A program made the position numbers and the translations under genes. The notes below the pieces were generated by a model. That model saw only the letters and a program-made list of their open reading frames with translations. It ran no database searches and was not told the DNA's origin. Positions 15,233 to 43,397 of a stretch of DNA of 64,000 nucleotides are shown here, piece by piece (position 1 is the first letter of the stretch; the number at the start of each line of letters is the position of its first letter). The stretch covers positions 372,001-436,000 of the forward strand of contig JANJGN010000323.1 of the NCBI GenBank assembly GCA_026770705.1. Reading direction: 5' to 3'. This stretch comes from Isurus oxyrinchus (Eukaryota).

Positions 15233-15269
15233 TGGGTAAATTGTGCAGACAGGTTACACACAGTCCACG

Positions 15270-16482: not shown

Positions 16483-16581
16483 TTAATGTATCTGTTGTGG
16501 GTGGAATTTTCGATTTGGATCAATAATACTAAACACTGATCACTCTGATTGTCACTCTGATCATTTCTGTTTCTATTACAG

Positions 16582-16698
16582 AAGAAAGATGAGAAGGATC
16601 TGGAAATGAAGTCTAACCACGGAGTCAATCCTGATACAGATGATGATCTTTACGCAAACTGTGAATTTGCCAAGGATTCTGTTTATGGGAATTTATAA
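16582..16698 (+). CDS. Putative terminal cytoplasmic exon with YANC and SVYGNL* motifs
   Basis: tacag| phase 0: KKDEKDLEMKSNHGVNPDTDDDLYANCEFAKDSVYGNL*; acceptor and first half are paralogous to 15580-15684. Confidence 0.65.
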   Translation, partial: KKDEKDLEMKSNHGVNPDTDDDLYANCEFAKDSVYGNL

Positions 16699-17749
16699 AC
16701 TGAGCAAGAATGAGGCACACATAGTGTGGGGAGAATACAGAACGGGAGAATCATTCAAAACTCCAATTTACCTTCCTAATATCCACAGGAACTCACTCCC
16801 AGGAAATAGATTTAAACCTCTTGTTACAATCTGATGGAATTTCTTCGGAATGATCTATCCAGGATGATTGTCTGTGGGTTTCAATTCGAACATCCTCCTT
16901 CAGAATTGTCCCTCACAGTTGGAAACATCCTTCTCTCCATTCTGATTGTAAATGTCTTTAGATATCGTTCGATGATGTACCAGGACAGAACGGACAAATT
17001 CAATCCCGTGTCCGTGATTGAGTTAATTTTCATTCTGTTATTCACCTTCCTGTCTGTCAGTGTTTACAGAATATTCATCAGCCAGTGTAGACTTCAGGAA
17101 ATGCAGGATCGGTGGATAATTGGAGCAGAGGAGATTGGCAAAATTTGCACACCATTTTGTAGTCAAATGTATTTTCAGATATATATTTGGATTTTCCACT
17201 TCATCGTTAAACAGCGAAACAAACAAGAATCTGGGAAACAGGGAAACAATTTGATTGGAGATTTGAGAAATTCTCTGCAGCTTAGAGGATAACAGATGTG
17301 CTACAGTGCCACCACTGGTAGGAGGACATCATTTCAGCGTGACATGTTTACATTCATGTTGCCAATGAACATTGAAAACTATGATGTGAAAAATTGTTTG
17401 CAGGTTTATCTTCTTCAGTATGTCATGGATGGATGAGACAGCTTTGATAACAGAATGAGATATAGCTGCAATAAACCACCATTTTAGTCTTTCACACTTG
17501 GAGAGTACAATGAGCATCCATCCTGAAGGCTGAGTGGATGGGTGGACTGTGCGATGTGTTACAGATTACAGAGACCAACATACTCGATCCTGGTTCCGCT
17601 CTGTGTTTGATGAGATACTTGATTCAAAGATTGGGAAAATAAATAATCCTCCTGCATTGATCTGTAACTGGTCATTTTCTCTGTTAATGAGGTGAGGACA
17701 GATTTGGGTTCGAGGTCCAAAATCAGACACATGCTTTGACTGCCCATTG

Positions 17750-20279: not shown

Positions 20280-20293
20280 CACTTCCTCATTTT
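20280..20293 (-). promoter_or_regulatory. PU.1/SPI-type ETS site in gene B promoter
   Basis: CACTTCCTCATTTT = AAAATGAGGAAGTG, ~50 bp upstream of putative exon 1; identical in C. Confidence 0.55.
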
Positions 20294-20334
20294 GTCTCAC
20301 AGTGACACATCCACCCTTTCTTATTAAACACACA

Positions 20335-20420
20335 GAGGGAGCAGCACAGGAAGAGGTCATTCAGCCCAAGCAGAGCGTGTGGGCAGTTCCTCCCCAGGCG
20401 AGCAGTCGGACAGGTCCTAG
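20335..20420 (+). other. Gene B putative non-coding exon 1
   Basis: Conserved block ending CTAG|gtaagt; start approximate. Confidence 0.55.
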
Positions 20421-20870
20421 GTAAGTAACGGAACGATTGGAATTCACTTCCACCACCAACACCGTCCTTTGTTGATGTTGTGACTTTATAAAGACAGATT
20501 CCAATGATTGATGCCTTTGAAAGATTTCTACTGATTATTGAGATCAGGGTGTGAGGCTCAAGTCTGTTGTACAGAACATCTTTCTAGCTCAAGGGATGAG
20601 GGAAGAGCAGGGACATGAGCTTTGGGACATCCTGAGGTGGTGAAAGGTGCTATAGAAATGCAAGTCCTTCAATGTTTGTCTTTCTTAAAGCCTTGTAACT
20701 CTCTGCAGAGCACCTATCATCCCACAGAGAATCAACTTAGTCTGTGAAGACATTGTGTAAAAGCAGTTCTGATCTCTCGAGAGCTGTCGGACAAGAGGTG
20801 AGGTCTCATTAACTCCTTTCTCTTTCACAGCTTGAGAGTGAGAAGTGGATGGAATATCTGGGAGTGGACG

Positions 20871-23800
20871 ATGATCGGGAAATCTTACTTTCTCTTGTCA
20901 CTTCTCCAAGGTAATATCATCATCAGCTCGGATAGATTTATGTTTAACAATCTTTGTAAAAGATCATTCATATCTCTTTATCTCTGTAACCTCCTGCAAC
21001 TCACCCAAACAACTTCCCAGATCTCTGTGTTACTCCAATTCCGGCCTCTTGACCATCCCCCGATTCCCATCACTCCAATACTGGCGGCCGGGCCTTCAGC
21101 TGCCTGGGGCCTGAGCTCTGGAATTCACTCCCTAAACCTCGGGGATTGAGGAGATCAGAGGGTTTCATTTTACTGAGAATCACCACGACCACATCACAGC
21201 TGCAGTGAGAATAGACAGAGAGTCCAGCCCTCGCACTTCCTGCACAGTTTCACAATAGCAACCACAATATGGAAATTTAAAAATACTGAAAGTTAAACCG
21301 AAGCCAAACCAGTCAGTGTAGAGAGATGAGATATTTACACAGTTTCCCTGTGTATCTTGTAGACACTGTGTTGGGTGGAAGACTGGCTTCACTAAACAGG
21401 GTCCTGAGGACCATGAGCCAATGTAGAATGAACTTGTCCACTCCTGTGTCCAGGATTCTCTTCCATCCATTATGAAACCTTGGGGAGATCCTTGTGTGTC
21501 CTGTAGATGGTCCACACAGCAGCCATTGTGCCCCAGTGATGGAGGGAGTGGATATCGAGTCTAGTGGATCTACAAACTATCCAGAGTTAAATATTGATAT
21601 TTCTCTCCCCAGCTGAACCCTCACAAGAGTGGAAAGGTGACACTCCACGAGAGGTTGCAGCACAGGAAGGCTCGTGTGTACAGATTCCATGTCATTACAG
21701 TTATCCATCGTGTCTGGAAAACCAACCGCGAGGTGGAGTCTGGTTTAATAATGAGAAACAGATTCCCTGGGCTCCCATTGCCTTTCACTCCAAGGATCAC
21801 AGTCACGAGTTACCACGGTTCCACCATCGGACTCGGCTGTCTGGAGACCTGAAAGATGGCGACTGTTCCCTGATTATAAACAACATCAGACGGGAAGATG
21901 CAGGACCTTATTTTTTCAGAATAGAATTTGACAATGGTCCGAGCCATAACTATTATCCTGTAACCCAGCTTCACGTTTCTGGTAAGTGCTGTGTTATAAT
22001 TACTCAACAATTCACATTCAACACTCAATGGGAAATAACACAAACTGTGATGTTTACATATTAACACAAAACACAGCTTATTATAACACACTGTCTGATT
22101 CTCAATAACCTGCTGATAGCTTCCAGTTCAGTCCTAAAGCAACCTCTAATACTCACTTTAATATCAATGATGAAAGGCATTAACTGTATTCTCAGGTTAT
22201 CCACACCCATCAATCTCTCCTGTCCTGTTTAAAAGTCTGACGTATCGATAAAAGAAAGATGTGTTTTTCTGCAGCGCAATTTACCACCTCAGGAGGATCC
22301 AAATCCCTTCACAGCCATTGAAATTATTCCTGAATTGTAGTCACAGATGTAAAACACAGCAGGCAGTTTGTGCACAGCAAGATCCAACAAACCACAAGGT
22401 GCTAAATCACCTAGATCACTGAGGAAATGAAAAGCCAGTGAACAGAAACCTCTGGTCTGATGAAGAGTCATACGGACTCGAAACGTTAACCCTGTCTTCC
22501 TCTCCACTGATACTGTCAGACCTGCTGAGTCTTTCCAGCAATTTTTGTTTTTGTTTCAGATTTCCAGCATCCGCAGTATTCTGCTTTTAACTCCAATCTC
22601 TGGTCTGAGCCTCTTCTCTCATCCAGTGTTCTCAATTTACATGTCTCGGAGTGAACGTGTATTAAGCTGAGAGACAGAAACACCAAAGTCTCAAAGCAGG
22701 AAATTCTCTCCTGATCATTGTAACCTCTCAGATCTGATATCATCCTTGTAAAAGTGCTTTCTCTTGTGGGACTGTGATTTCTATTTGAACTGATGCTTCA
22801 CGTTATATTTTTCTAAAAGGATCCATTTTCTGTCTGTTAGATTTCACAGATAAACCCACGATTTTCCCTGCTGAAATTATTGCAGGAAAGCGTGTGGATG
22901 TAAGCTGCACCATCAACACAACGTGCAATGGAACAGCAGCACCTGTCTTAACCTGGGACACTCCCACTGACGTACCTGGATCAGTCTCAAACACTGTAAC
23001 TCAGCATGGTGTCACTCTGACCTATACTTCTGTTCTGACCCTGATCCCATCACTCAAACACCACGGACACACTCTCAGCTGCAGAGTGAGATATCCATCT
23101 GTTTCATCGGAGCGGACCCTCGTACTAACTGTGCAAGGTAAGTACATACACCTTTCATGCTACATCAGCACTCCCTCAGCGCTGACCCTCTGACAGTGCA
23201 GCCCGTTCTCAGTGTCCACATTCTAAGGCCTCTCAAAGTGCTTCACAGTCGATAGAAGTTAATTGATCTTTATTTGATTATTGCTGAATGAAGAGACAAG
23301 CTGTGTAAAGTTTACATCTCGCACACACCATTCTCCATGGCAACACCTCCACCTATCAGAGACCACTTGCCAACCAATCAGCACTCTCCTCCCATTAAGT
23401 ATAAATTGTTGTTCACTTTCTGTTGGTAAACCTGCAAACGTGCTTCTTGATTCCTGCCCTGACATCTTAATGTCCAAATGAATAGAACAAGTTCCAACAA
23501 TGAGCTGTGGTTGGTGATTCCTCACGTTACATCCAGGGACACTGGAGACTATCAGTGTGTGGCAGAAAATGAACATGGAGCAGTGGAGGGGTTCATAACC
23601 GTCACTGTGGAACGTGAGTGTACACAGACTTCAACATCTGTCTCAGATTCAAACATTACACAAACACCCTCAAATATACAGAACTAAATAGACACGTGCA
23701 GACACACATGTATGAGCAATTACAAAGACACACTCACGAACAAACACACTAGCACACACTCCCCTGTGGTTTACCTGAGTACTGCACTGGAGAGTTGGCC

Positions 23801-25424
23801 AGGATTCTGGGATTTGTGTTCCCATTCATATTTATGGAAGAATATGGAAATTGCAAAGTCTATTACAGACACTCAGATGCATAGAGGCACTCACAGATAC
23901 TCTCTGCCTCTCCAACTCTCTCTCTCCCTTTAAGAAGCTTCCTGAAAGCTAACCCTTCGAACAATCACCGGTCCCAACTCCTCCTTATCTGATTCTGTGT
24001 GATTTTGTTTGTGTATCTGAGAGTAAGAGAGAGGTGGAGAGGTTTAGTTAGAGAATTCCTGCTGGTGAAAAGCTTACATCATTTACTCACCTTTCCAGTG
24101 CACATATTTCCCAGTATGTCCAATGCCCCTGTTTATAATGATGACTGCCTATGTAAACGTCACGCTGTAGTTACATTCTCCCACCAGTGGTGGCATTGTA
24201 GCACTTAATCCTTGTGTTTCCCAGCTTTTCAAGCAACTCCACTTCCCAGTTTGCTACACAAGCTGTGAGTTCATCAGAATTAAATTATTTCTCAAATGAT
24301 AGATTTGATAATTCATTTTATTGAAAACTTCCTCAGTGCCTCCTTGAAGGGTTCACACTCTCTGGGAAGCAGGAATAGGCTGGATGTTGGGGAGGTCATC
24401 TTTTCCCAGAGAGTAGGGATCCTTGAGAATGTGCTGTCAGTGGGTGTGGTAGTTCCTGTTTCTCTGTCGCCTTCAAGAGGGATCTGGAGTGGTTACTGAC
24501 TGGGGGAGAGATCATGGAAGCGGAGAATGATACAGCACAGGAGGAGGCCATTCAGCCCATTGTGCCTGTGCCAGGTCTTTCAATGTTCTATCCAATCAGA
24601 TCCACTAACCACCACTCCACTTTGCCACCATCATCCTCTTTCAAGTGTTTATCCAATTTCCCTTTTGAAAGTTCCTATTGAATCTGCTTCCAGCGCCCTT
24701 TCAGGCAGCACCTTCCAGATCACAACAACTCGCTCTGTCAAAACAAATTCTCCTCATCTCCACCTCCGGTTCGTCAATCTTGTCCCTCTGGTTACCGACC
24801 CTCCTGCCCCTTAAATACATCGATACTGTTCACTTGAACCACTCCCTGTGGGAGCGAGTTCCACATTCTCCCCTCTCTCTGGGTAAAGATTGGAACTGTT
24901 TATTAAGCGGGGGGTGTAAGTCCGTGGGGGAGTCCATCTCGATCCTGCCCGATTCGCACACACGTCTGAGATGGATTTCCACCCTGCACTAAACGTTTCC
25001 AGAATTTTCTACAGCACAATCCTGTACACAGCGATGGAGAGAAACATTGGACAGGGAGTCCAACAGCACAATGATCCATTCTCACCAATGTTCCACGCTA
25101 AGGGGAAAGTTCCGATTGTCCACTCTTAGAGTGTTTCCAATGAAAACATTCATTCCACATTGAATCCCAGTGGATGAGTCAATATTCCAGCAAATGTTGC
25201 AGTGATATGAAGCTTGATTGTTCAGCCAGAGTGAGAGATTGAAAGCGGAGAGTCAGTGATGATTTCTTTCTGTGTGTTCTCTAGACAGTGGAGGAGAGAT
25301 TCTGCACGTGATCCTGATCCTGGGAATACGAGCTGTGATATTCCTTGTGGCTGTGGTTATCACTATCGCTGGAGTCTGTGTCTGGGAGAGACAAACAGTG
25401 AAAGGAAGTCGACAGACTGTTTGA
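20871..25424 (+). CDS. Gene B: two-Ig Siglec-like activating-type receptor, ~281 aa; join(20871-20910,21613-21981,22841-23137,25285-25424)
   Basis: All four exons open and phase-1 compatible with canonical GT-AG. Essential Arg codon at 21918-21920. TM ILHVILILGIRAVIFLVAVVITIAGVCVW with Arg at 25329-25331; tail ERQTVKGSRQTV*. Confidence 0.75.
21613..21981 (+). CDS. Gene B Siglec V-set exon
   Basis: Within ORF 21594-22064; SCVQIPC, GDCSL, DAGPYFFRIE; cag| and G|gtaagt. Confidence 0.92.
22235..22700 (+). mobile_element. Composite repeat insert in the V-C2 intron (SINE + Penelope-terminal fragment), shared by B and C (31410-31880), absent in A
   Basis: Alignment by eye of the three V-C2 introns; tctgatgaagagtcatacggactcgaaacgttaac matches the Penelope terminus at ~18170-18250 in reverse. 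Confidence 0.65.
22841..23137 (+). CDS. Gene B C2-set exon
   Basis: 297 nt, open, ttag| and G|gtaagt. Confidence 0.92.
23461..23613 (+). pseudogene. 3' half of a stalk Ig exon (remnant) in gene B
   Basis: Matches ...MNRTSSNNELWLV...ITVTVE|gtgagt, but the 5' half and native acceptor are missing. Confidence 0.8.
25285..25424 (+). CDS. Gene B TM + short tail exon (TM arginine)
   Basis: ttctctag| phase 1: SGGEILHVILILGIRAVIFLVAVVITIAGVCVWERQTVKGSRQTV*; nearly identical in copy D. Confidence 0.75.
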
Positions 25425-25544
25425 AGCTTTGTACAGCAACAATCTGGTCAGTCAGTGCGGACAAATAACGTGTGATGTTGGGTTAAGTGTAATGAAACTG
25501 GTCAGTGTCCTGGTTAGAATCACCTTCGTATCAGAGAGGCATTC

Positions 25545-26140
25545 CAGCACAGTGGGAGCCCATTCAGCCCATTGAGTCCATGCTGTCTCTCTGTAGAGCA
25601 ATCCAGTCAGTCCCATTCCCCTGCTCTATCCCCGTATCCCTGTGAGTTTATTTCCCCTCAAGTGTCCATCCAATTTCCTTTTGAAATCGTTCATCGTCTC
25701 CACTTCCACCATCCTCGTAGGCAGCGAGTTCCAGCTCATTACCACTCGCTGTGTAAAAAAGTTCCTTCTCAAATCCCCCCTCTGCCCAAAACCTTCAATC
25801 TGTGTCCCCCAGTCCTTGTACCATCAGCTAATGGCAACAGCTTCTCTTTGTCTACCTGATCTAAACCCATCATCATCTTGTACACCTCGATCAGATCCCC
25901 CCTCAATCTCCTTTGCTCCAAGGAGAACAACCCCAGCTTCTCCAACCCAACCTTGTAGCTAAAATCCCTCATCCCTGGACCCATTCTGCTCAATCTCCTC
26001 CCCACCCTCTCAAGGACCCTCACTTCCTTCCCAAAATGAGGAGACCAGAACTGGACACAATACTCTAGCTGTGACCTAACCAGAGCTTTATAAATGTTCA
26101 GCGTAACCTCCCTGTGTTTGTACTCAATTCCTCGATTTAT
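25545..26140 (-). mobile_element. CR1 LINE 3' fragment
   Basis: ORF 25769-26194(-): IYKALVRSQLEYCVQFWSP…RRLRGDLIEVYK. Confidence 0.88.
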
Positions 26141-26500
26141 GAAAAGCTTATTCTTTCCATCAGCACAAACAGCAATTTCCAAGCGGACTCCCATCAGCAG
26201 ACAGAGTGCAATGAAACATCGGCATGCCTGCTTCTTAATGTACGGAGAGAAACCTGGAACGAGAGATTCTCCTTCTTCTCCTCAGCAAGCTGAAACTTTT
26301 CCTTATACCTGGTGCTCCCCAGTCCTGCTGTGTGGACACATCATAACCACGGCATTGTCTGGCTGTGTGCAGCCAACATGGTCGAATAGAAATGAACAGA
26401 AATGTGACGTTGCTAAACTCTGTTCTCTGATTGGAATGTGCTTTCTGAATGCTGCACCTTTTTCATGCTGTGATAGATTGTAAGAAGCATTTGGGTTATG

Positions 26501-26506
26501 AATAAA
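26501..26506 (+). terminator. Candidate polyadenylation signal of gene B
   Basis: AATAAA within a block (~26360-26740) homologous to the 3' UTR of gene C (43425-43590 and 45665-45860). Confidence 0.45.
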
Positions 26507-26859
26507 ATTACATTGATTAACACAAGTGATTAAAATGCTCAGGCTGTTCTGTAGATATTTATAGATTAAAATACTTATTTTGCTGCCAAATTCTTGCCTC
26601 AAAGAAAAGCTTCTTGTTGTCACATTTTCTCTATTATATAAATTCCTGTGCCCATCCTTATAATAGAAATTTCCAATGTAAACATGTCACATTGTAGTTT
26701 CACACTCCTGCCAGTGGTGGTGCCATTCCAAAGCTGTCCTGCTGCACAGACACAGTGAGAAATATTCTCGATGTGTACATGATGTTGTTGTTACACAGAC
26801 ATCAGGCGGAACCTTGGGCAGTGCCTAGAATGCACTTAGGACAGTGCAGACCATGCTCA

Positions 26860-29075
26860 GAACTGACAGTGCAGCGTTTCCTCAGTGCTGACCCTCCGTC
26901 AGTGCAGCGCTCCCTCATTACTGTCTCTCTGACAGTGCTGCACTACCTCATTATTGACCCTTTTCAAGTGCTTCACCCCGTCAGCATTGACCTTCTGACC
27001 GTGCAGGATTCCCTCATGGCTGACACTCTGACAGTGCAACACTCCCTGAATACTGACCCTCTGATACTGTACCCCTCCATCACTAATGACTTTCCAACAG
27101 TTCAGCACTCCCTCGGTACAGACCCTCTGACAGGGCAGCATTCCCTCAGTATTCAAACTCCCACTATGCAGCTGTCCCTCAGTATTCTCACCCCCACAGT
27201 GCAGCACTCCCTCAGTACTCTCCCTCCCACAGTGCAGTACTCCCTCAGTACTCACCCTCCCACAGTGCAGCACTCCCTCAGTACTCACCCTCCCACAGTG
27301 CAGCACTCCCTCAGTACTCACCCTCCCACAGTGCAGTACTCCCTCAGTACTCACCCTCCCACAGTGCAGCACTCCCTCAGTTCTCTCACTCCCACAGTGC
27401 AGCACTCCCTCAGTTCTCTCACTCCCACAGTGCAGCACTCCCTCAGTACTCCCCCTCCCACAGTGCAGCACTCCCTCAGTACTCACCCTCCCACAGTGCA
27501 GCACACCCTCAGTACTCACCCACCCACAGTGCAGCACTCCCTCAGTACTCACCCACCCACAGTGCAGCACTCCCTCAGTTCTCTCACTCCCACAGTGCAG
27601 CACTCCCTCAGTACTCACCCTCCCACAGTGCAGCACTCCCTCAGTTCTCTCACTCCCACAGTGCAGTACTCCCTCAGTACTCACCCTCCCACAGTGCAGC
27701 ACACCCTCAGTACTCACCCTCCCACAGTGCAGCACTCCATCAGTACTCATCCTCCCAAAGTGCAGCACTCCCTCAGTACTCCCCCTCCCACAGTGCAGCA
27801 CTCCCTCAGTACTCACCCTCCCACAGTGCAGCACTCCCTCAGTACTCATCCTCCCAAAGTGCAGCACTCCCTCAGTACTCACCCTCCCACAGTGCAGCAC
27901 ACCCTCAGTACTCACCCTCCCCCAGTGCAGCACTCCCTCAGTACTCACCCTCCCACAGTGCAGTACTCCCTCAGTACTCACCCTCCCACAGTGCAGCACA
28001 CCCTCAGTACTCACCCTCCCACAGTGCAGCACTCCCTCAGTACTCACCCTCCCACAGTGCAGTACTCCCTCAGTACTCACCCTCCCACAGTGCAGCACAC
28101 CCTCAGTACTCACCCTCCCACAGTGCAGCACTCCCTCAGTACTCACCCTCCCACAGTGCAGCACTCCCTCAGTACTCACCCTCCCACAGTGCAGCACTCC
28201 CTCAGTACTCACCCTCCCACAGTGCAGCACATCCTCAGTACTCACCCTCCCACAGTGCAGCACTCCCTCAGTACTCACCCTCCCACTGTGCTGTGTGAGT
28301 TGTTTCAATCAAGACTGGTGCACAAAGAGGGAGGTTTCATTGCTAAATCATTGAAATCGGTGAAAATTATTTTTAGGCTTACGAGAACAAGAATTAGTTC
28401 GTCATATCCTTTCTTTAGCAATAACACACAGTACTAGAATCTCTGTTTAAATAAATTCCAGTTAAACTTTGCCATGAAAGGATATCTTCTCACACTCCGC
28501 TCTCCCTCAGTACTAACCCTCCCACAGTCCGGCACCCCCTCAATACTGACCCTCCAACTGTGCGGAACTCACTCAGTGCAGACCCGCCGACAGTGCAGCA
28601 CTCCCTCATTACTGACCCTCCGACATTGCAGCATTCCTTCACTACTGGCCCTCTGACAGTGCAGCACTCCCACATTACTGACCCTCTGATAGTGCAGCAG
28701 ACCCTCAGTACTGACCCCACTAACAGTGCAGCACTCGCTCAGTACTGACCCTCCCACAGTGCAGCACTCTCTCAGTACTACACTCCTGACAGTGAAGCAC
28801 TCCCTTATTAATGACCCTCTTCCAGTGCAGAACTCCCACATTACTGACACTCTGACAGTGCAGCACTCCCACATTACTGTCCCTCTGACAGTGCAGCACT
28901 CCCTCAGTACTGACCCTCCGACATTGCAGCAATCCTTCACTACTGGCCCTCTGACAGTGCAGCAATCCCACATTACTGACCTTCTGATAGTGCAGCACTC
29001 ACTCAGTACTGACCCTCACACAGTGCAGCACTCCCTCAGTACTATACCCCTGACAGTGCAGCACTCCTTCAGTAA
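26860..29075 (+). repeat. 33-bp minisatellite arrays between B and C
   Basis: 26860-28290 (homogeneous 'actcaccctccca' variant) and 28495-29075. Confidence 0.95.
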
Positions 29076-29295
29076 TGATATCAGGGATTGTCAACATGTA
29101 TCATACGGCCAGAGACCTGTATTGGGAACTCTATCGCCTGCGCTTCAGCCTCTGAGATGAGGGGGAGGGGTCTAATCCCACGGAGCCAATGGAGAAGCTT
29201 GAAGACTACAGCTGCCCAAATATGAGCTGACAGTTCACACATGGTAAACGTTTTGCTGAGAGCACAAAACATCCTCGAACTTCTCACTGATTACC

Positions 29296-29309
29296 CACTT
29301 CCTCATTTT
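29296..29309 (-). promoter_or_regulatory. PU.1/SPI-type ETS site in gene C promoter
   Basis: CACTTCCTCATTTT upstream of putative exon 1. Confidence 0.55.
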
Positions 29310-29349
29310 GTCTCACAGTGACACATCCACCCTTTCTAATTAAACACAC

Positions 29350-29436
29350 AGAGGGAGCAGCACAGGAAGAGGTCATTCAGCCCAAGCAGAGCGTGTGGGC
29401 AGTTCCTCCCCAGGCGAGCAGTCGGACAGGTCCTGG
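29350..29436 (+). other. Gene C putative non-coding exon 1
   Basis: Conserved block ending CTGG|gtaagt; start approximate. Confidence 0.55.
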
Positions 29437-29886
29437 GTAAGTAACGGAACGATTGGAATTCACTTCCACCACCAACACCGTCCTTTGTTGATGTTGTGAC
29501 TTTATAAAGACAGATTCCAATGATTGATGCCTTTGAAAGATTTCTAGTGATTATTGAGATCTGGGTGTGAGACTCAAGTCTGTTGTACAGAACATCTTTC
29601 TAGCTCAAGGGATGAGGGAAGTGCAGAGACATGAGCTTTGGGACATCCTGAGGTGGTGAAAGGTGCTATAGAAATGCAAGTCCTTCCTTGTTTTTCCTTC
29701 TTAAAGCCTTGTAACTCTCTGCAGAGCACCTATCATCCCACAGAGAATCAAATTAGTCTGTGAAGACATTGTCTAAAAGCAGTTCTGATCTCTCGAGAGC
29801 TGTCGGACAAGAGGTGAAGTCTCATTAACTCCTTTCTCTTTCAGAACTTCAGAGTTAGAAGCTGAGGAAATATCTGGGAGTGGACA

Positions 29887-32800: not shown

Positions 32801-35398
32801 CAGAAACATACAGACACAAGCCAACAGACACAAACACACACAAAAACATGTGGGTTCCCTCTCCTCTCCCAGTGCTGCACTGGAGTCTCAGTATCAGCTC
32901 CGAATCTGTGTTGAAGGAAGGTAAACTCCAGATCATCAAGACACTGAACTGCATGGAGCAACCTCCTGAACAGAGAATTGTAGATTTACCCCTCAGTGCT
33001 CCATTGGTCAAATACAATTCATTGCCTTTGAAGCCTTTGTGGACATCCTGAGGATCTGAAAGGGAGTTTCCTGCATTCTAGATGGACACCTCCACTGGTG
33101 GGAGAATGTAACTGCAGTGTGACAGTTTACATAGGCAGTGCCCATTGTAAATGTGAAATAAGTTCTTATCCTGAGGGAATGTACCTGGAAATGCATTCAG
33201 ACATCAGATACAGAGACATGATGCATGGAGTCTTGTTGTGCACTATATTTGCTCATATTAAAATTTTTCTATGTTTATAGATGCACCACGGAATCTCTCA
33301 ATTACTTCTCTTGGTGTGATTAACGCTTCATCGATCGATGTAATTGAGGGGAATTCTGCAGTGATAATCTGCTCTGTCGAGAGCTTCCCAGCTTCTAACC
33401 TGACATGGCGACATCTTAATGTCCCAATGAACAGAACAAATTCCAACAATGAGCTGTGGTTGGTGATTCCTCACGTTACATCCAAGGACACTGGAGACTA
33501 TCAGTGTGTGGCAGAGAATGAACATGGAGCAGTGGAGGGGTTCATAACCATCACTGTGGAACGTGAGTTACTGCAAACTTCAACATCACTCACACACACA
33601 CACACACATACACACACGTGCACACACATACTCATAAACATACACACACATTCACTCATGCACAGAAATATACACAAAGACACACTCACATATGCGCAAA
33701 CACATACACACACGCACACACAGACGCATGCGTGCATACTCACACAAACACACTCACATGTGCAGAAACACAAACACAAACACATACACACACATGAGGT
33801 CCCTATCCTCTCTCAGTGCCGCACTGGAGTCTTGGTATCAGCTCTGATTCTGTGTTGAAGGAAGGTAAACTCCAGATCAGCAAGACCCTGAATTGGATGA
33901 GCAACCTCCTGAACAGAGAATTGTAGATTTATACCTCAGTGCTCCATCAATCAAATACAATTCATTGCCTGTAAATCCCTTGGCAAAATCTTGAGGATGT
34001 GAAAGTTTCTTTCATTCTAGGTGGACAGCACATCTACTGGTGGGAGAATGTAACTGTAGTTTGACTGTTTACATAGGCAGTGCCCATTATAAATTTGACA
34101 GTGGAAGTTATATGGAGGGAAGGTATCTGGAAATGCATACAGACATCAGATACAGAGAGATGATGCATGGAGTCTTGCTGTGCATGCTGCTTGCTCACAT
34201 TAAAAACTTTATTTGTTTTTAGATGCTCCACAGAATCTCTCAATTAATTCTCATGATATGATTAACGCTTCATCGATCAATATAATTGAGCGGAATTCTG
34301 CAGTGATAATCTGCTCTGTCGAGAGCTTCCCAGCTTCTAACCTGACGTGGCGACATCTTAATGTCCCAATGAACAGAACAAGTTCCAACAATGAGCTGTG
34401 GTTGGTGATTCCTCAGGTTACATCCAGGGACACTGGAGACTATCAGTGTGTGGCAGAGAATGAACATGGAGCAGTGGAGGGGTTCATAACCATCACTGTG
34501 GAACGTGAGTTANNNNNNNNNNNNNNNNNNNNNNNNNNNNNNNNNNNNNNNNNNNNNNNNNNNNNNNNNNNNNNNNNNNNNNNNNNNNNNNNNNNNNNNN
34601 NNNNNNNNNNNNNNNNNNNNNNNNNNNNNNNNNNNNNNNNNNNNNNNNNNNNNNNNNNNNNCTCTCAGTGCTGCACTGGAGTCTTGGTATCAGCTCTGAT
34701 TCTGTGTTGAAGGAAGGTGAACTCCAGATCAGCAAGACCCTGAATTGGATGAGCAACTTCCTGAACAGAGAAATGTAGTTTTACTCCTCAGTGCTCCATC
34801 AATCAAATACAATTCACGGGCTTTCAATCCCTTGGAGGCATCTTGAGAGTGTTAAAGGATGTTTGTTTCATTCTGGGTGGACAGCAACTCTGTTGGTGGG
34901 AGAATGCAACTGCAGTGTGACAGTTTACATAGGAAGTGCCCATTATAAATGTGACAGTATTTTTTCCTGAGGGAAGGTACCTGGAAATGCATTCCAATAT
35001 CAGATACAGAGACATGATGCATGGAGTCTTGCTGTGCACTATGCTTGCTCACATTAAAATCTTTATTTGTTTTTAAATGCTCCACAGAATCTCTCAATTA
35101 CTTCTCTTGATATGATTAACGCTTCATCGATCAATATAATTGAGGGGAATTCTGCAGTGATAATCTGCTCTGTCGAGAGCTTCCCAGCTTCTAACCTGAC
35201 GTGGCGACATCTTAATGTCCCAATGAACAGAACAAGTTCCAACAATGAGCTGTGGTTGGTGATTCCTCACGTTACATCCAGGGACACTGGAGACTATCAG
35301 TGTGTGGCAGAGAATGAACATGGAGCAGTGGAGGGATTCATAACCATCACTGTGGAATGTGAGTTAACGCAAACTTCAACATCACTCACATGCACACA

Positions 35399-35435
<37 letters not shown>

Positions 35436-38400
35436 ACACAGACACATGTAGGCACACACATGCATAATTATACACACACAGTCATACACGTACAAACACA
35501 TACACAGGAAAATACACACCCATCTCAAACACACACATATTCACACCCACACATAGACACACACATGCACATACTCTGACTCATGGACAGACGTAGACAC
35601 ACAGACACACGCGCATGCACACACACAGATACATGTGTGCATACACACACAAACACACTCACATGTGCAGTAACACAAACACACACATACACACGCGTGA
35701 GTTCCCTGTCCTCTCTCAGTGCTGCACTGGAGCCTTAGTATGAGTTCCGATTCTGTGTTGGAGGAAGGTAAACTCCAGATCAACAAGACCCTGAATTGGA
35801 TGAGCAACCTACTGAACAGAGAATTGTAGATTTACCCCTCAGTGCTCCATCAATCAAATACAATTCATTGCCTGTCAAGCCCTTTGCGAAATCCTGAGGA
35901 TGTGAAAGCAAGCTTCTTTCATTCTAAATGGACAACACCTCTACTGGTGGGAGAATGCAATTGCAGTGTGACAGTTTACATAGGCAGTGTCCATTAAAAA
36001 TGTGCCATAAGACCTTATCCTGAGGGAAGTTACCTGGAAATGCATTCAGACATCAGATACAGAGACATGATGCATGGCGTCTTGTGCACTATGTTGCTCA
36101 CGTTAAAATCTTTCTATATATATATAGATGCACCATTGAATCTCTCAATTAATTCTCTTGATATGATTAACGCTTCATCGATCAATATAATTGAGGGGAA
36201 TTCTGCAGTGATAATCTGCTCTGTCGAGAGCTTCCCATCTTCCAACCTGACGTGGCGACATCTTAATGTCCCAATGAACAGAACAGGTTCCAACAATGAG
36301 CTGTGGTTGGTGATTCCTCACGTTACATCCAGGGACACTGGAGACTATCAGTGTGTGGCAGAGAATGAACATGGAGCAGTGGAGGGGTTCATAACCATCA
36401 CTGTGGAACGTGAGTTAATGCCAACTCAACATCTCTCGCACACACGCACACACACACACACACACGCGCGCACATACACACACACACACACACACTCATG
36501 TGTAGACACATACATGCACATTTACACACACAGTCATACATGTGCAAAAACATACACGGAAACACACATACACTCAACTCACACGCACACACTCACACAG
36601 GCACACATATAGACATACACATGCACTCACGTTCACTCATGCACAGACGTATACACAAAGACACACAAACATATGCAAAACACATACACACACGCACACA
36701 CAGACACATGTGTGCATACACACACAAACACACTCACATGTGCAGAAACACAAACACAAACACATACACACGCATGAGGTCCCTCTCCTCTCTCAGTGCT
36801 GCACTGGAGTCTTGGTATCAGCTCCGATTCTGTGTTGAAGGAAGGTAAACTCCAGATCAACAAGACCCTGAATTGGATGAGCAACCTCCTGAACAGAGAA
36901 TTGTAGGTTTACCCCTAAGTGCTCCATCGATCAAATACAATCATTGCCTGTCAAGCCCTTGGGGACATCCTGAGGATGTGCAAGTAAGTTTCTTTCATTC
37001 TAGGTGGACAGCGCCTCCACTGGTGGGAGAATGTAACTGTAGTTTGACTGTTTACATAGGCAGTGCCCATTATAAATTTGACAGTGGAAGTTATATGGAG
37101 GGAAAGTATCTGGAAATGCATACAGATATCAGATACAGAGAGATGATGCATGGAGTCTTGCTGTGCATGCTGCTTGCTCACATTAAAAACTTTATTTGTT
37201 TTTAGATGCTCCACAGAATCTCTCAATTAATTCTCTTGATATGATTAACGCTTCATCGATCAATATAATTGAGCGGAATTCTGCAGTGATAATCTGCTCT
37301 GTCGAGAGCTTCCCAGCTTCTAACCTGACGTGGCGACATCTTAATGTCCCAATGAACAGAACAAGTTCCAACAATGAGCTGTGGTTGGTGATTCCTCATG
37401 TTACATCCAGGGACACTGGAGACTATCTGTGTGTGGCAGAGAATGAACATGGAGCAGTGGAGGGATTCATAACCATCACTGTGGAACGTGAGTTAACACA
37501 AGCTTCAACATTACTCTCACATATACACAGACACACTCATACACACACAGACACACACACACACACGTGCACACAAACAAGCAATCATGTGCAATCCCAC
37601 ATGTCCACAGGTGTGTACGCCTGCATGCTCACACACACAGAAGGAAACATACACAGAATCACACGTGTGCTTGCTCACACACACACAGACATGTGTGAGT
37701 TGTCTGTTCTCCCTGTGCTGCACTGGAGTGTTGATCCAGATTCTGCTCTGAAACACTGACGACATCAGCTGAACAAGACCCTGTATTGGACGAGCAGCCC
37801 CCTGCACAGAGAATTGTAGGTTTATCACTCAATACCCCATTATTCTAAAGCAATTCCTCCACTGTCAAATCCCTGTGAACATCCTGATGATGTGAAAGAC
37901 ATTTTCTTTTCTTCTAGCCTGACAGTGTCTCCTCTGGTGGAAGGCTGTAATTACAGCGTGACAGTTTACATATCCACATGCAGCAAGAGCTGAACAACAC
38001 TCAGCTTGGGCTGAGACAATTAATGCATCACAAGCACCAGGCAGTGATCATCTCCAACAAGAGAGAATCTAACCATCTCCCCTTGATGTTCAGTGAGTTT
38101 ACTATCACTGAATCCCCCACAATCAACATCCTGGGGGATGTTAACCAAACAACTAACTGGACCGGCCATAAATACTGTGGCTACAGGAGCCGGTCAGAGG
38201 CTGGGAATTCTGTAGGGGTGAAAAACTCACCACCACCTCCTCAAGGGCAATTAGGGATGGGTAATAAATGCTGGTCTAGATAGATACAGCCACTTCCCAT
38301 GAATGTACAAAAAGAAAAACACCGGCAGTGACCATTAGAAAAGTTGACATAGAAACTTAAAACAGGAAAGAACTCTTGAAATGCACATAGACACCAAATA

Positions 38401-38778
38401 GAGAGAGATGTATCATGGAGTCTTGCTGTGCACTGTGTTTGCTCACAATGAAACCTTTATTTGTATTTAGATGCACCACGGAACCTATCAATTACTTCAC
38501 TTGGTATGATTAACGCTTCATCGATCAATATAATTGAGGGGAATTCTGCAGAGATAATCTGCTCTGTCGAGAGCTTCCCAGCTTCTAACCTGACGTGGCG
38601 ACATCTTAATGTCCCAATGAACAGAACAAGTTCCAACAATGAGCTGTGGTTGGTGATTCCTCACGTTACATCCAGGGACACTGGAGACTATCAGTGTGAG
38701 GCAGAGAATGAACATGGAGCAGTGGAGGGGTTCATGACCATCACTGTGGAACGTGAGTTACTGCAAACTTCAACATCA

Positions 38779-38828
<50 letters not shown>

Positions 38829-41800
38829 TAGGCACACACATGCACACTTATACACACAGTCATACACGTGCAAACACATACAGAGGAATATATATACACA
38901 ACTCACACACACACACACACATTCATGCCCACACATAGACACACACATGCACATTCACTCACTCTTGGACAGGCGTAGACACACAGACATGCGTGCATGC
39001 GCACGCACAGATACATGTGTGCATACACACACAAGCACACTCACTTGTGCAGAAACACAAACACTCACACACTCTCACACATACACAAATATGAGTTCCC
39101 TCTCCCCTCTCAGGGTGCACTGGAGTCTCGGTATCAGCTCTGATTCTGTGTTGAAGGAAGGTAAACTCCAGATCAACAAGTCCCTGAACTGGAGGAGCAA
39201 CCTCCTGAACAGAGAATTGTAGATTTACCCCTCAGTGCTCCATCAATCAAACATTGCCTGTCAAGCCCTTGGCGAAATCCTGAGAATATGAAAGCAAGCT
39301 TCTTTCATTCTAGATTGACAACACCTCTACTGGTGGGAGAATGCAATTGCAGTGTGACAGTTTACATAGGCAGTGTCCATTAAAAATGTGGCATAAGACC
39401 TTATCTTGAGGGAAGTTACCTGAAAATGCATTCAGACATCAGATACAGAGACATGATGCATGGAGTCTTGCTGTGCACCATGTTTGCTCACGTTAAAATC
39501 TTTATATGTTTTTAGATGCACCACGGAATCTCTCAATCAATTCTCTTGATATGATTAATGCTTCATCGATCAATATAATTGAGGGGAATTCTGCAGTGAT
39601 AATCTGCTCTGTCGAGAGCTTCCCAGCTTCTAACCTGACGTGGCGACATCTTAATATCCCAATGAACAGAACAAGTTCCAACAATGAGCTGTGGTTGGTG
39701 ATTCCTCACGTTACATCCAGGGACACTGGAGACTATCAGTGTGTGGCAGAGAATGAACATGGAGCAGTGGAGGGGTCCATAACCATCACTGTGGAACGTG
39801 AGTTACTGCAAACTTCAACATCACTCACACACACATACATACACACACATACACACACACACGCACACACATACACATAAACAGGTGCACGTAAACATGC
39901 GTTCATATTTAATCCCATGTCTGCACAGGTGTGCACGCCTTTATGCTCACACACAGAAGCATACATACAGAATCACACGTGTGCTTGCTCACACACACAC
40001 AGACATGTGTGAGTTGTCTGTTCTCCCTGTGCTGCACTGGAGTGTTGCTCCAGATTCTGCTCTGAAACACTGACGACATCAGCTGAACAAGACCCTGTAT
40101 TGGACGAGCAGCCCCCTGCACAGAGAATTGTAGGTTTATCACTCAATACCCCATTATTCTAAAGCAATTCCTCCACTGTCAAATCCCTGTGAACATCCTG
40201 ATGATGTGAAAGACATTTTCTTTTCTTCTAGCCTGACAGTGTCTCCTCTGGTGGAAGGCTGTAATTACAGCGTGACAGTTTACATATCCACACACAGCAA
40301 GAGTTGAATAACACTCAGTTGGGCTGAGAAATGACAATTAATGTTCATGCCACACAAGTACCAGGGAGAGCTGTTCCTTGTATTGACCCTTGGGATTGTT
40401 AATCCCAACCTGATAGGGCAGAGGGGGCCCAGGTTGTGACTATCAGTGTGTGGCAGAGAATGAACATGGAGCAGTGGAGGGGTTCATAACCATCACTGTG
40501 GAATGTGAGTGTGGAGATACATTTGTTTGTTTGTTGTCTCCGTGGTCTCCGTGGAGCCATTGGGATCGTGTTGTTTTTAATCCAGTTTTCTTCAATCCTC
40601 GCTCAGTCCACGTTATCCACACATCCAATTTTTCCTCTCCCTTTCTGTTTTTGCTCTCAGTTTCTCCTTCAATGGTTGTGAGGACAAGGCTGTCAGGTCT
40701 TCGTTTCCAATCTCCATACTTGACGACCTTTCTCTCTCTAACTGTCCTGAACAACCCTTTTAATTGCTGAACATCTCCTCTTGATCTAAGCCACTCATTG
40801 GTCTTGGTTACATGGATTACTTTGAAATGCAACACTTGTATTCATAAATTGCTTAGAAATGACTAAACATTCAACAGCCAATGAAGCATTATCGAAGTAA
40901 GCTCACTGTTGTAAAGGAGGAAACACAGGTACTGATTTGTACACAGCAAGATCCCACAAACCACCGTGTCTTAATGACCTGATCGGCGATTATTTCAATG
41001 AGGTTGGTTGTTACATGTGTAGAGACTACATACCCTTTAGGGAGGGAAGCATGTCTCGATGTGGATGTGACTCCAGTCTCAGACACCAACATGGTTAACT
41101 CACACCTGCCCTCTGAACTGGTCTCCCAGTTTGGGACAAACCAGTGGTTCAGGAGGAAGACCTCCCACCACCTTCTCAAGGGAAACTAGGGATGGACAAT
41201 AAATGTCAGCATTGCCCGAGAATGAGTATTTAAACACTGAGTGAGTGTATCGCTTCTCGAGATACATCGGAGCATCATTGTAAATCTGTAGTGCAGTAAT
41301 TAATGGCTGTTTTTACAGGTAGAGACTCCAGTAAAGGGACAGTAGGATTGTTCACGGCTGGGATCATGTTGAGTGTTTTCCTGGCTGGAATCTTCATCTT
41401 CATCTGTGTGAGAAAGTAAGTGGGAAGATTTAACTTGATTTTAATATAAACATTTGCTTCAATGTTCTTTCCTGAAGTCGGTGATTGTTTCCCTTGTGTT
41501 AAGCGCCAGATGCCTCTCCGTAACTGGTCTCTTTATCCGTTATGATCCAGACAGTGTTTTTCATTGCCCGTTATCCAGATGAATAATAATCAGTTGCTGT
41601 GATCTGGAAGGTGCTGCCTGAAAGAGCGGTGGAAGCAGGTTCAGTAGGAACTTTCAAAAGGGAAATTGGATAAATACTTGAAGGGGGAACATTTGAAGGG
41701 CTATGGGGGGAAGAGCAGGGGTGGAGGGGGGGTCAAAGATATGGCGTGTTATTATAATGATATTATACCTTAGGCTTATTTACTGTATAAGACAGAAAAC

Positions 41801-43397
41801 ACCAAACACTCATAGGGGATTTGGTGAGAATGTTAATGATTTGTTTATCAGGACTCAGCAGGAGAACAGTTATACATACGGAGAAAGCTTGAAGGCATCA
41901 GAGCTGTGAGTGTGTGCTCTGCTCAAAGCAAAAGTCAAACTGAGATTGGATCACATGACACACTTCCATTATAGTGATGTCACGCTGATACCCCTTATTG
42001 GAACAAGAGACAGTCCAGTCATTGGTGTAAGTTACAGTGTGCTCTGTGTCTGTGCTGCACTGACTCTTTGCTATATGATAACCACAGTGTGATATTGTGT
42101 TATTGCAGGAGAAAGACAGCGATGGAGGAGAGAGTTTCAGGGACCAATTACATTGCATTGACCCTCAGGTCACTCTCTGTGAAGCACCAGGTACAGGAGC
42201 TGTTTACACTCACTCCAAAGCTTCAACCTCAGTGTGTAGACAACACGTATACCAGATTCTCAGCCGGGTTACACACAGATATCGCCCTGTGAAGTGAGCA
42301 ATGGCTCAGTGGTCAGCACTGTCTCTCGCTCCCTGCCTCTGTCTCCCTCCATCACTCGCTCTTTGACCAGAAACCTGAACACAATAATGACAAGGCACCT
42401 GATGTCAGTAGTGAGGGAGTGCTGCACTGTCAGAGGGTCAGTAGTGAGGGAGTGCTGCACTGTCGGAGTGTCAGTACTGAGGGAGTGCTGCACTGTCGGA
42501 GGGTCAGTACTGAGGGTGTGTTGCACTGTCAGAGGATCAGTACTGAGGGAGTGCTGCACTGTCAGAGGGTCAGTACTGAGGGAGTGCTACACTGTCAGAG
42601 GGTCAGTATTGAGGGAGTGCTGCACCGTCAGAGGATCAGTACTGAGGGAGTGCTGCACTGTCAGAGGGTCAGTATTGAGGGAGTGCTGCACTGTCAGAGG
42701 GTCAGTATTGAGGGAGTGCTGCACTGTCAGAATGTCAGTACTGAGGGAATGCTGCACTGTCAGAGGGTCAGCATTGAGGGAGTGCTGCACTGTCAGAGGG
42801 TCAGTACTGAGGGAGTGCTTCACTGACAGAGGGTCAGTACTGAGGGAGTGCTGCACTGTCAGAGGGTCAGCACTGAGGGAGTGCTGCATTGTCAGAGGGT
42901 CAGTACTGAGGGAGTGCTGCACTGTCTGATGGTCAGTATTGAGGGAGTGCTGCACTGTTGGAGTGTGATAGAGATTAAATTATAAAGAGAGAGAGAAAGC
43001 GAGAGAGAAAGAGAGACAGAGAAAGAGAGTGAAAAAAAGGCTTAAACCCACTGAGACACGACTGACACTAATGAGGCTGCACAATAATTTAACCCTATCA
43101 GTGCCAGTAAATGATGTGAGGATGTCTTCTGTTTCCATTTCTCTGTAGGATGAACAGAACTTGCTGATTACTGAGCCCCGGGAAACAACCAGAGACACAA
43201 CTAGTGAGGGGGAGACCCCAGCTCCCCGGGATCTCTCTGAAGGTCCAGTGGGAGGCGATGTTGGACATGGGAACCCCGACAATACCGCCGACCTTCTCTA
43301 CGCCAACATCAACTTTTCAAAGCTGCCCGGCGGTGACAGGACTGTGCACAGGAGCGAGGACACGGAATACGCACAGATCAGGTTCCAGAAAAACTGA
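29887..43397 (+). CDS. Gene C: long Siglec-like inhibitory-type receptor, ~972 aa; join(29887-29926,30788-31156,32016-32312,32532-32624,33281-33562,34223-34504,36128-36409,37206-37487,38471-38752,39516-39797,41319-41415,42109-42190,43149-43397)
   Basis: Exons sum to 2919 nt, open, with consistent phases. V + C2 + mini-exon + 6 intact Ig repeats + TM + tail with TNYIAL, LLYANI and TEYAQI. The exact repeat set spliced in is inferred. Confidence 0.8.
30788..31156 (+). CDS. Gene C Siglec V-set exon
   Basis: Within ORF 30769-31239; essential Arg codon 31093-31095 (YFFRIQ). Confidence 0.92.
32016..32312 (+). CDS. Gene C C2-set exon
   Basis: 297 nt, open, canonical splice sites. Confidence 0.92.
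32532..32624 (+). CDS. Gene C internally deleted stalk mini-exon (31 codons)
   Basis: APQNLSFTSLDMINSSSINIIEGFITITVE; both splice sites intact; 189 nt missing relative to the 282-nt repeat. Confidence 0.65.
33281..33562 (+). CDS. Gene C stalk Ig repeat 1
   Basis: 282 nt, phase 1-1, atag| and C|gtgagt. Confidence 0.85.
34223..34504 (+). CDS. Gene C stalk Ig repeat 2
   Basis: 282 nt, phase 1-1, canonical sites. Confidence 0.85.
35077..35358 (+). pseudogene. Gene C stalk Ig repeat 3 with dead acceptor
   Basis: Open 282-nt repeat, but the acceptor reads tttttaa|ATG instead of tttttag|ATG. Confidence 0.75.
36128..36409 (+). CDS. Gene C stalk Ig repeat 4
   Basis: 282 nt, phase 1-1; acceptor tatatag has a weak pyrimidine tract. 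Confidence 0.75.
37206..37487 (+). CDS. Gene C stalk Ig repeat 5
   Basis: 282 nt, phase 1-1, canonical sites. Confidence 0.85.
37975..38320 (+). mobile_element. CR1/L2-type LINE fragment in a stalk intron
   Basis: MQQELNN…SNKRESNHLPLMF…ITESPTINILG; truncated copy at ~40290-40365. Confidence 0.7.
38471..38752 (+). CDS. Gene C stalk Ig repeat 6
   Basis: 282 nt, phase 1-1, canonical sites. Confidence 0.85.
39516..39797 (+). CDS. Gene C stalk Ig repeat 7
   Basis: 282 nt, phase 1-1, canonical sites. Confidence 0.85.
40438..40504 (+). pseudogene. 3' remnant of a further stalk Ig repeat
   Basis: DYQCVAENEHGAVEGFITITVE|gtgagt with no native acceptor. Confidence 0.75.
40530..40820 (-). mobile_element. 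RTE-clade LINE 3' fragment
   Basis: KYGDWKRRPDSLVLTTIEGETESKNRKG resembles the RTE ORF C-terminus (YFGH..RR..SL….IEG…GKR.RG). Confidence 0.55.
41319..41415 (+). CDS. Gene C transmembrane exon (uncharged)
   Basis: tttacag|; RDSSKGTVGLFTAGIMLSVFLAGIFIFICVRK; AA|gtaagt phase 2. Confidence 0.88.
42109..42190 (+). CDS. Gene C cytoplasmic exon 1 (TNYIAL)
   Basis: ttgcag| phase 2 to CAG|gtacag phase 0; bridges the TM and terminal exon phases exactly. Confidence 0.7.
42400..42962 (-). repeat. 33-bp minisatellite (reverse orientation) in the last intron of C
   Basis: Units of gagggagtgctgcactgtcagagggtcagtact. Confidence 0.95.
43149..43397 (+). CDS. Gene C terminal exon with ITIM-like LLYANI and ITSM TEYAQI
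   Basis: ctgtag| phase 0; ORF 43161-43397; motifs at 43293-43310 and 43362-43379. Confidence 0.88.
   Translation, partial: DEQNLLITEPRETTRDTTSEGETPAPRDLSEGPVGGDVGHGNPDNTADLLYANINFSKLPGGDRTVHRSEDTEYAQIRFQKN

Follow-up and report, generated by a model that had tools for sequence, protein, structure and literature searches.

The locus and its two genes

Paired Siglecs are taken to be a recent primate answer to pathogens cloaked in sialic acid. This analysis concerns two adjacent Siglec-like receptor genes from a cartilaginous fish, found in a 64,000-nucleotide (nt) stretch of the Isurus oxyrinchus genome (GenBank assembly GCA_026770705.1, contig JANJGN010000323.1, positions 372,001 to 436,000 of the forward strand). 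The whole stretch is called the window here, and coordinates are counted from its first letter. Genes B (20280-25424) and C (29296-43397) lie on the same (+) strand, 9 kb apart, and are accompanied by two further copies, A and D. The window contains members of this receptor family and repeats only, and is interrupted by five runs of N. A first-pass annotation made from the letters alone had read B and C as an activating and an inhibitory receptor with a common head.

Gene B consists of a leader, a V-set exon, a C2-set exon and a single exon for the transmembrane (TM) segment and tail, preceded by an exon 1 that is non-coding here (20280-20420, +; donor read as CCTAG/GTAAGT). The leader exon (20831-20910, +) has its ATG at 20871, encodes MIGKSYFLLSLLQ and ends in a phase 1 donor; the same leader is present in the RefSeq shark models P0151, P0156 and P0158. 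The V-set exon (21613-21981, +) is of Siglec type, with the YFFR arginine, cysteines 21, 26 and 84, and an extra cysteine (PSCLEN). For the C2-set exon (22841-23137, +), transcript-like contigs place the acceptor at 22841, with an alternative AG lying 9 nt downstream. The TM/tail exon (25285-25424, +) reads DSGGEILHVILILGIRAVIFLVAVVITIAGVCVW-ERQTVKGSRQTV-stop, with the TGA at 25422-25424, and its full translation is DSGGE-ILHVILILGIRAVIFLVAVVITIAGVCVW-ERQTVKGSRQTV-stop. An arginine is buried at the eleventh residue of its 29-residue hydrophobic helix (ILILGIRAV), and the tail of 12 residues has neither tyrosine nor motif. All coding exons of gene B are open and all its splice sites canonical. 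Between the C2 and TM exons lies the 3' half of an immunoglobulin (Ig) exon without an acceptor (23461-23620, +; alignment A1, blastn).

Gene C (+) begins with a counterpart of this exon 1 (29296-29436), followed by the leader coding sequence (29887-29926), a V-set exon (30788-31156) and a C2-set exon (32016-32312). Next comes a tandem array of Ig exons (32532-39797, +) in which seven 282-nt exons of phase 1-1 follow an in-frame 93-nt remnant at 32532-32624. The seven exons (33281-33562, 34223-34504, 35077-35358, 36128-36409, 37206-37487, 38471-38752 and 39516-39797) match Pfam Ig_3/I-set and differ from one another by 4-14 nt, with only 4 nt separating 34223 from 37206. Each unit of ~0.85-1.27 kb comprises an exon, a CA-microsatellite and a conserved 415-nt block, and across 32532-40510 the array is flanked by two in-register remnants, the 93-nt one and one on the 3' side. 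The acceptor of exon 35077-35358 is broken (AA). The gene C protein, as read from these exons, may carry up to six or seven near-identical Ig domains. Comparable multi-copy Ig arrays are found in the shark models P0017 and P0023.

An assembly gap (34513-34661) falls within this array, in the CA-microsatellite between an Ig-exon donor and the conserved intron block that precedes the next exon. The N run begins 8 nt past the donor (GTGAGTTA) of exon 34223-34504, and the sequence that resumes after it (34662-35076) aligns at 84-87% to 33810-34221, 36790-37204 and others, that is, to the 415-nt block found before every Ig exon. The gap is therefore intronic and no reading frame crosses it, although the count of Ig units refers to the assembled sequence only and the gap may hide further units. 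A second N run, at 12014-12156, ends at exactly the position homologous to the end of this one, and each is followed by CTCTCAGTGCTGCACTGG, the start of the conserved intron block. Both runs thus replace the same CA-rich microsatellite.

The back end of gene C is spread over three exons. The TM exon (41319-41415, +) encodes an uncharged helix, TVGLFTAGIMLSVFLAGIFIFICV, ends in phase 2 and is 87% identical to Carcharodon P0151. It is followed by a first cytoplasmic exon (42109-42190, +) with the motif TNYIAL, at which Carcharodon and Cetorhinus relatives read TRDIAL or TSDIAL, with D for Y; judged by these comparisons, the extra tyrosine motif is private to the gene C copy. The last exon (43149-43397, +) carries an inhibitory motif of the immunoreceptor tyrosine-based type (ITIM, LLYANI), then a membrane-distal motif resembling an immunoreceptor tyrosine-based switch motif (ITSM, TEYAQI), and a stop. 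Both motifs, in a tail reading LLYANINF...TEYAQIRF, are canonical.

A shared head on opposed back ends

Genes B and C are continuously alignable over their 5' halves. By blastn and a windowed comparison, 20280-23169 in B corresponds to 29296-32344 in C at 92-99% identity (~95% over 2.9 kb), introns included, and identity is fairly even over exons and introns. The first-pass annotation had described near-identical leader, V-set and C2 exons, with about 12 of 123 amino acids differing in the V-set and three in the C2. Exon comparison bears this out: the V exons differ at 22 of 366 nt, which gives 11 amino acids plus the split first codon, or 12 of 123 residues (90% amino-acid identity), and the C2 exons differ by 3 of 98 amino acids (97%). 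An arginine of the sialic-acid-binding type, in the context GPYFFRI, is kept in both. This likeness is a real duplication, far beyond chance. It ends 32 nt past the C2 donor, beyond which the 3' halves are unrelated: the TM arginine and 12-residue tyrosine-free tail of B, and the uncharged helix with ITIM and ITSM of C, can be read directly from the exons. The junctions proposed for these back ends, 23137>25285 in B and 41415>42109>43149 in C, all fall on canonical GT..AG sites. Adjacency, ectodomain exons that are ~95% identical and opposed back ends all hold, and with them the earlier analogy to the paired-receptor architecture of primates.

The ratio of nonsynonymous to synonymous substitution rates (dN/dS) between the two V exons is 0.32, a value that does not support positive selection on the V domain. 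The differences are not scattered evenly along the sequence. Four of the first 8 nt of V differ, as do five of the ten at 21709-21718 (B letters there TCGTGTCTGG), and this clustering hints at short conversion tracts. No donor copy was identified for these putative tracts in V.

The arrangement of B recurs in copy D, which lies inverted at the end of the window. B 22919-25583 corresponds to 64000-61329 in D at 94.8%, and the Arg-TM exon is identical at 162 of 163 nt. In 100-nt windows, the TM exon and its flanks reach 99-100% identity, while most of the shared intron lies at 88-97%. Since D has the same order of C2 exon, intron and TM exon, B is not a chimera of the assembly.

Siglec character of the head

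By sequence and predicted fold, the head is of Siglec type. Searches here and below used single exons or database proteins as queries. When the V exon of gene B was compared with PDB sequences by phmmer, the best 18 matches were all Siglecs (E 8.6e-15 to 7e-9), led by Siglec-5 (8.6e-15) and followed by Siglec-8, Siglec-7, MAG, CD33, Siglec-10, sialoadhesin and Siglec-15; the scores of Siglec-5, -7 and -8 are about equal to that of MAG. The arginine context, GPYFFRIE in B and GPYFFRIQ in C, aligns to YFFRVE of Siglec-5 and YFFRLE of Siglec-8. In Pfam, the V exon of B matches V-set (3.5e-11) and Ig_CD22 (4.6e-9, above its cutoff), and the C2 exon matches C2-set_2 (2.7e-9). An AlphaFold2 model of the V exon has a predicted local distance difference test score of 89.7, and in a Foldseek search with this model all matches listed down to rank 47 are Siglec V domains (TM-scores 0.80-0.88).

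At the sequence level the Siglec cysteine pattern is present, with C-x4-C in strand B and the DCSL cysteine in V, and VSCTxNTTCNG and LSCRV in C2, where Siglecs have an additional cysteine that takes part in the interdomain bond. In an alignment of 24 family members (alignment A2), C21, C26 and C84 are invariant and R102 is nearly so. V domains with the extra cysteine have also been found in models from Scyliorhinus, Carcharodon, Cetorhinus and Mustelus, where they sit behind another V, and several of these domains start with AEPSQ, as does the V of B.

Transcript-like evidence

Transcript evidence comes from Logan contigs of four runs, belonging to four studies and two organisms, compared over 20280-25700; that these runs are RNA is no more than a guess. 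Contigs of all four runs contain the joints 21981>22841 and 23137>25285, both with GT..AG ends. Three of the four runs have coverage in the exon bins and almost none in most intron bins outside repeats. Contigs also join the leader to a V exon. The splice from a B-type C2 exon to the Arg-TM exon is therefore real as a class, although the contigs do not separate gene B from its paralogues or from related species. The junction 23137>25285, which the first-pass annotation had singled out for an RNA search, is thus seen in RNA-like contigs of four runs, though these contigs are not provably derived from B.

Contigs of runs X1 and X5 further connect exon 1 to the leader exon (joints 20418>20830/20832). 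Exon 1 of B has homologues in C (29296-29436), in A (~2690-2830) and in a solitary copy at 14928-15233. Within it, 20334-20420 in B and 29350-29436 in C (and ~2740-2830 upstream of A) copy a cytoplasmic coding exon of family members with another tail type: translated, it gives GSSTGRGHSAQAERVGSSSPGEQSDRS, and the Carcharodon model P0016 has the matching RSSTGRSHSVQAERVGSYSAGEQSDWSW in its tail. Exon 1 is either a tail exon co-opted as an exon of the 5' untranslated region or a sign of read-through transcripts linking tandem genes. A further copy of this exon-1-like tail exon lies inside the tail region of A (14928-15233).

An upstream ATG (MEYLGVDDD...) precedes the leader ATG of B by 19 nt, out of frame (window 20852-20873), and the same arrangement is seen in A and C. 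In models from Scyliorhinus and Chiloscyllium, the equivalent MKYLE.TM is in frame with the leader. With T at -3 of the upstream ATG and A at -3 of the leader ATG, leaky scanning is plausible.

Relatives in sharks and rays

A full HMMER scan with the V exon of B found 1255 proteins at E <= 0.001. The best matches are RefSeq predictions from sharks (Scyliorhinus, Carcharodon, Cetorhinus, Chiloscyllium, Hemiscyllium, Mustelus and Heptranchias) and rays (Pristis, Hypanus, Mobula, Rhinoraja, Hemitrygon, Narcine and Leucoraja), automatically named CD33-like, Siglec-5/8/11/12/13/14/15 or MAG-like. In a FastTree phylogeny of 249 V domains, built without curated reference Siglecs, B and C fall in a clade of 48 rows whose named members are all elasmobranch. 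Siglec-like proteins of tetrapods and ray-finned fishes lie outside this clade, and deeper nodes are weak. A word-based search with a Carcharodon B-type protein gave 92 matches, all from sharks or rays; the elasmobranch-only clade rests on these and on the names of 30 of 150 representative matches. No chimaera homologue was seen among the named matches, which is not evidence of absence. The elasmobranch V clade and the 92 of 92 elasmobranch relatives support the earlier proposal that the lineage has a Siglec system of its own. The further suggestion that this system evolved independently holds for the clade of V domains but not for every module, since the ITIM..TEYxEI tail is common to Siglec-like proteins of bony vertebrates.

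The closest matches to the modules of B and C lie in models from Carcharodon and Cetorhinus, as expected of a lamniform shark or a near relative. The V domain of B is 98% identical to the second V of Carcharodon P0155 and its TM segment 96% identical to P0154 and P0155; for C, the TM segment and tail reach 72-87% identity with P0151 of Carcharodon and P0002 of Cetorhinus. In Carcharodon, Chiloscyllium and two species of Scyliorhinus, the Arg-TM cassette is attached to ectodomains of three kinds, V-C2, V-V-C2 and V-C2-Ig(n). Its core, ILILGIRA, is invariant over three shark orders, arginine included. RefSeq models from Carcharodon, Scyliorhinus and Chiloscyllium also share the '...LTVQ/DSGGE...ILILGIRA...' junction and cassette with B, a further argument against a chimera. 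A Hypanus (stingray) model has a similar arginine helix and short tail, likely a counterpart of the cassette judging from its sequence. The tail type of C (LxYAxIxF...TEYAxIRFQ) occurs in sharks and rays, and resembles the tails of turtle, medaka and bowfin proteins and of P0107 (BLASTP E 0.008 against P0107).

The family is large and modular rather than a single pair, with four copies (A to D) in the window alone. The skate models P0214, P0221, P0222 and P0223 end in another short-tail cassette, RGSERSWKCIVALIVLAVIF...CCRNK; its helix has no buried charge, and it represents a third kind of back end.

Interpretation and alternatives

These observations are probably best explained by an elasmobranch-specific cluster of Siglec-type receptor genes of the Ig superfamily, assembled from interchangeable exon modules, in which B and C form an activating/inhibitory pair. 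Read from sequence, the paired activating/inhibitory Siglec-like interpretation is supported in three respects: architecture, expression of the B-type class and lineage specificity. Under this interpretation, B and C would have one ligand in common, probably a glycan with sialic acid that the YFFR arginine holds. Once tyrosine-phosphorylated, C would recruit SHP-type phosphatases at its ITIM and ITSM and dampen the cell. The membrane arginine of B would pair with an acidic adaptor bearing an activation motif of the immunoreceptor tyrosine-based type (ITAM), similar to DAP12 or FcR-gamma, and activate it. A ligand mimic exploiting C would then also trigger B, and new pairs could arise through tandem duplication and exon shuffling.

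If this interpretation is correct, the paired-Siglec strategy would be pushed back to cartilaginous fishes, and sharks would provide a separate case, set up by nature, in which to study how an activating receptor and its inhibitory partner stay matched. Shark immunology would also gain concrete candidates for innate receptors. A broader extension is conceivable, though we lean slightly against it: the CD33-type ITIM..TEYxEI tail, Siglecs of CD33-related type and the paired strategy itself might date from near the origin of jawed vertebrates, rather than being a tetrapod or mammalian innovation. Elasmobranchs would then possess an old, lineage-wide system in which V, C2 and Ig exons that duplicate fast are repeatedly recombined with a single conserved Arg-TM exon and with two cassettes for ITIM tails.

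Several points weigh against the paired interpretation, and most are taken up below with the alternative that they touch. The most general is that the ligand and the coupling to adaptor and phosphatase are ones we infer from the motif logic of mammalian paired receptors. In addition, the V domain of B lies directly behind the leader, where its extra cysteine would be unpaired, and its best database matches are second V domains of V-V receptors.

The first alternative bears on the ligand alone and leaves room for paired signalling. B and C may have the Siglec fold without being sialic-acid lectins, and may instead recognise a protein or another glycan; this is unlikely, yet it deserves real weight. 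Some Siglec relatives are non-binding or arginine-independent. In the phmmer alignment, a histidine (SHNY) in B and C replaces the aromatic residue that is tyrosine in Siglec-5 (KYSY), so that the sialic-acid pocket departs somewhat from the canonical form; at this strand-G position, Tyr or Phe is found in many of the shark paralogues. Rapid family expansion and shuffling, together with stacked V domains, are moreover typical of receptors that chase variable ligands. Against this, B and C both retain the YFFR arginine in its sequence context, R102 is nearly invariant in alignment A2, and the best sequence and fold matches are ligand-bound Siglec V domains.

A second alternative, which we regard as improbable, is that B is a silent or decaying by-product of segmental duplication, in which the 5' end is of C type and became joined to a 3' end of B/D type, and that the transcripts come from D or other members of the family. 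All the contigs have T at 22912, where B has A, and those covering the TM exon differ from B at about 3 of ~150 letters. Contigs that join the leader to V carry a C-type V start, and among the contigs of the four runs none joins the B leader to the B V start CTGAACCC. In run X1, another V exon precedes the B-type V start. These RNA-like contigs may derive not from B but from D, other paralogues or a different species. B also retains a dead half Ig exon, and the neighbouring copy A is clearly pseudogenised, indicating that gene death is common here. However, the open coding exons and canonical splice sites of B, the V dN/dS of 0.32 relative to C, and the near-complete conservation of the TM exon between B and D, set against most of their shared intron, all argue against it. 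The few mismatches could also be explained if the sampled organisms were other individuals or species.

The third alternative is that the short Arg-TM form is not activating. It could instead serve as a decoy or soak up ligand, act together with another membrane protein, or be retained within the cell. The tail of the B type has no motif, and the skate short-tail cassette, with its uncharged helix, indicates that short forms need not all signal. This alternative seems quite improbable, given that the ILILGIRA core and its arginine are invariant in three shark orders and that the TM exon is more conserved than the intron, the pattern expected of a helix packing against a partner chain. A basic TM residue with a short tail is also the rule for receptors coupled to DAP12 or FcR-gamma.

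Finally, the near-identity of B and C is very improbable as an assembly artefact of duplicated haplotypes or of a mis-join across repeats: the five N runs and the highly repetitive Ig array leave unit number and order uncertain, but B and C show ~5% divergence all along their shared part and no relation in their 3' halves, copies A and D are independent instances, and the same architectures are annotated in assemblies of several other species.

Comparison with known receptor systems

The paired interpretation places B and C closest to the primate pairs SIGLEC5/SIGLEC14 and SIGLEC11/SIGLEC16, which are likewise adjacent genes with near-identical V and C2 exons. In these pairs too, one partner has an ITIM and a membrane-distal ITSM-like motif, and the other a basic TM residue and a very short tail. 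Papers on paired Siglecs, which concern primates, present such pairs as a defence against pathogens that turn the inhibitory partner to their advantage (PMC4042635, PMC5701461, PMC13358205). The shark genes differ from the primate pairs in several respects. Their V domains belong to a clade with only sharks and rays among its named members, and gene C, the putative inhibitory partner, has a tandem array of Ig exons. The identity of B and C runs evenly through the introns at ~95%, more suggestive of duplication than of a conversion tract with sharp borders. In addition, the exon for the putative activating cassette of B is old and has been reused widely, in several shark orders and probably also in rays, and is not a recent derivative of its partner.

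Similarities to the mammalian CD33-related Siglecs are also extensive. Both groups have a V-C2 head with YFFR and form clusters of fast-evolving genes with pseudogenes, and the tail of gene C follows the same plan of an ITIM, ~20 residues and then TEYxEI. B and C match Siglec-5, -7, -8 and CD33 in sequence and fold, with MAG and sialoadhesin about as good. Unlike the mammalian group, however, the shark family has stacked V domains and amplified Ig exons. Fish genomes have been said to lack CD33-related Siglecs (PMC7226832), in a paper from which the words 'cartilaginous' and 'shark' are absent.

Other paired families, including KIR, LILR, PILR, CEACAM1/3 and the Xenopus CEACAM pairs, also provide a shared ectodomain with two alternative back ends, an ITIM tail or a charged TM segment and short tail (PMC5112662, PMC3210942). 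B and C differ from KIR, LILR and CEACAM in that their ligand-binding domain is of Siglec type.

Genes of this kind are not new to databases. RefSeq shark and ray models named 'myeloid cell surface antigen CD33-like' or 'sialic acid-binding Ig-like lectin 12/13/14' belong to the same family and use the same modules as B and C; examples are Carcharodon carcharias XP_041037177 and the models P0154, P0155 and P0157. These are pipeline predictions for which no published analysis was found; several are incomplete at the N-terminus, and none is identical to B or C, so that the window represents another paralogue or a closely related lamniform species. Literature searches on Siglecs of sharks and cartilaginous fishes and on paired receptors found no description of the system, and in the whale-shark genome paper Siglecs appear only in a list of gnathostome gene families. 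No usable result came from searching for a cartilaginous-fish DAP12. The first-pass annotation knew of no description of the system; in the literature one does seem to be missing, but databases already contain gene models under automatic names. What is new is the interpretation rather than the discovery of genes, the models having been present in RefSeq unnoticed.

Other copies and repeats in the window

Copy A (3266-~16700, +) is a paralogue of C type that looks dead. It has a leader (3266-3305), a V exon with an in-frame TGA (5504-5872), a C2 exon (6273-6569), two Ig exons (11571-11849, and 12574-12855 with the donor AT) and an uncharged TM exon (14120-14216), all on the + strand. A tail-exon copy within 14928-15233 (+) has a 1-nt insertion at its donor, and the last exon (~16581-16700, +) encodes DLYANC...SVYGNL, an inhibitory tail of a second kind. 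The idea that A is a functional third partner was rejected, given the TGA in V, the broken Ig-exon donor and the insertion at the tail-exon donor.

Copy D (61489-64000, -) is a second gene of B type, inverted and cut by the end of the window. On the minus strand it comprises a partial but open C2 exon (64000-63782), an Ig remnant (63458-63258) and the coding part of its Arg-TM exon (61628-61489).

Much of the space between the receptor genes is filled by 33-nt minisatellites, with arrays at 6771-11433, 26755-29160, 42269-42955, 49671-50147 and 54836-55291. Large open reading frames over these arrays (e.g. 26755-28437; both strands) were rejected as genes and regarded as repeat artefacts. Retrotransposon fragments lie at 44604-45023, 59119-59490, 7705-8019, 25772-26194 (-) and 60019-60483. 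Two of them match the Pfam reverse transcriptase family just under its cutoff, and the others, which gave no Pfam match, carry a common ...LEYC.QFW... motif.

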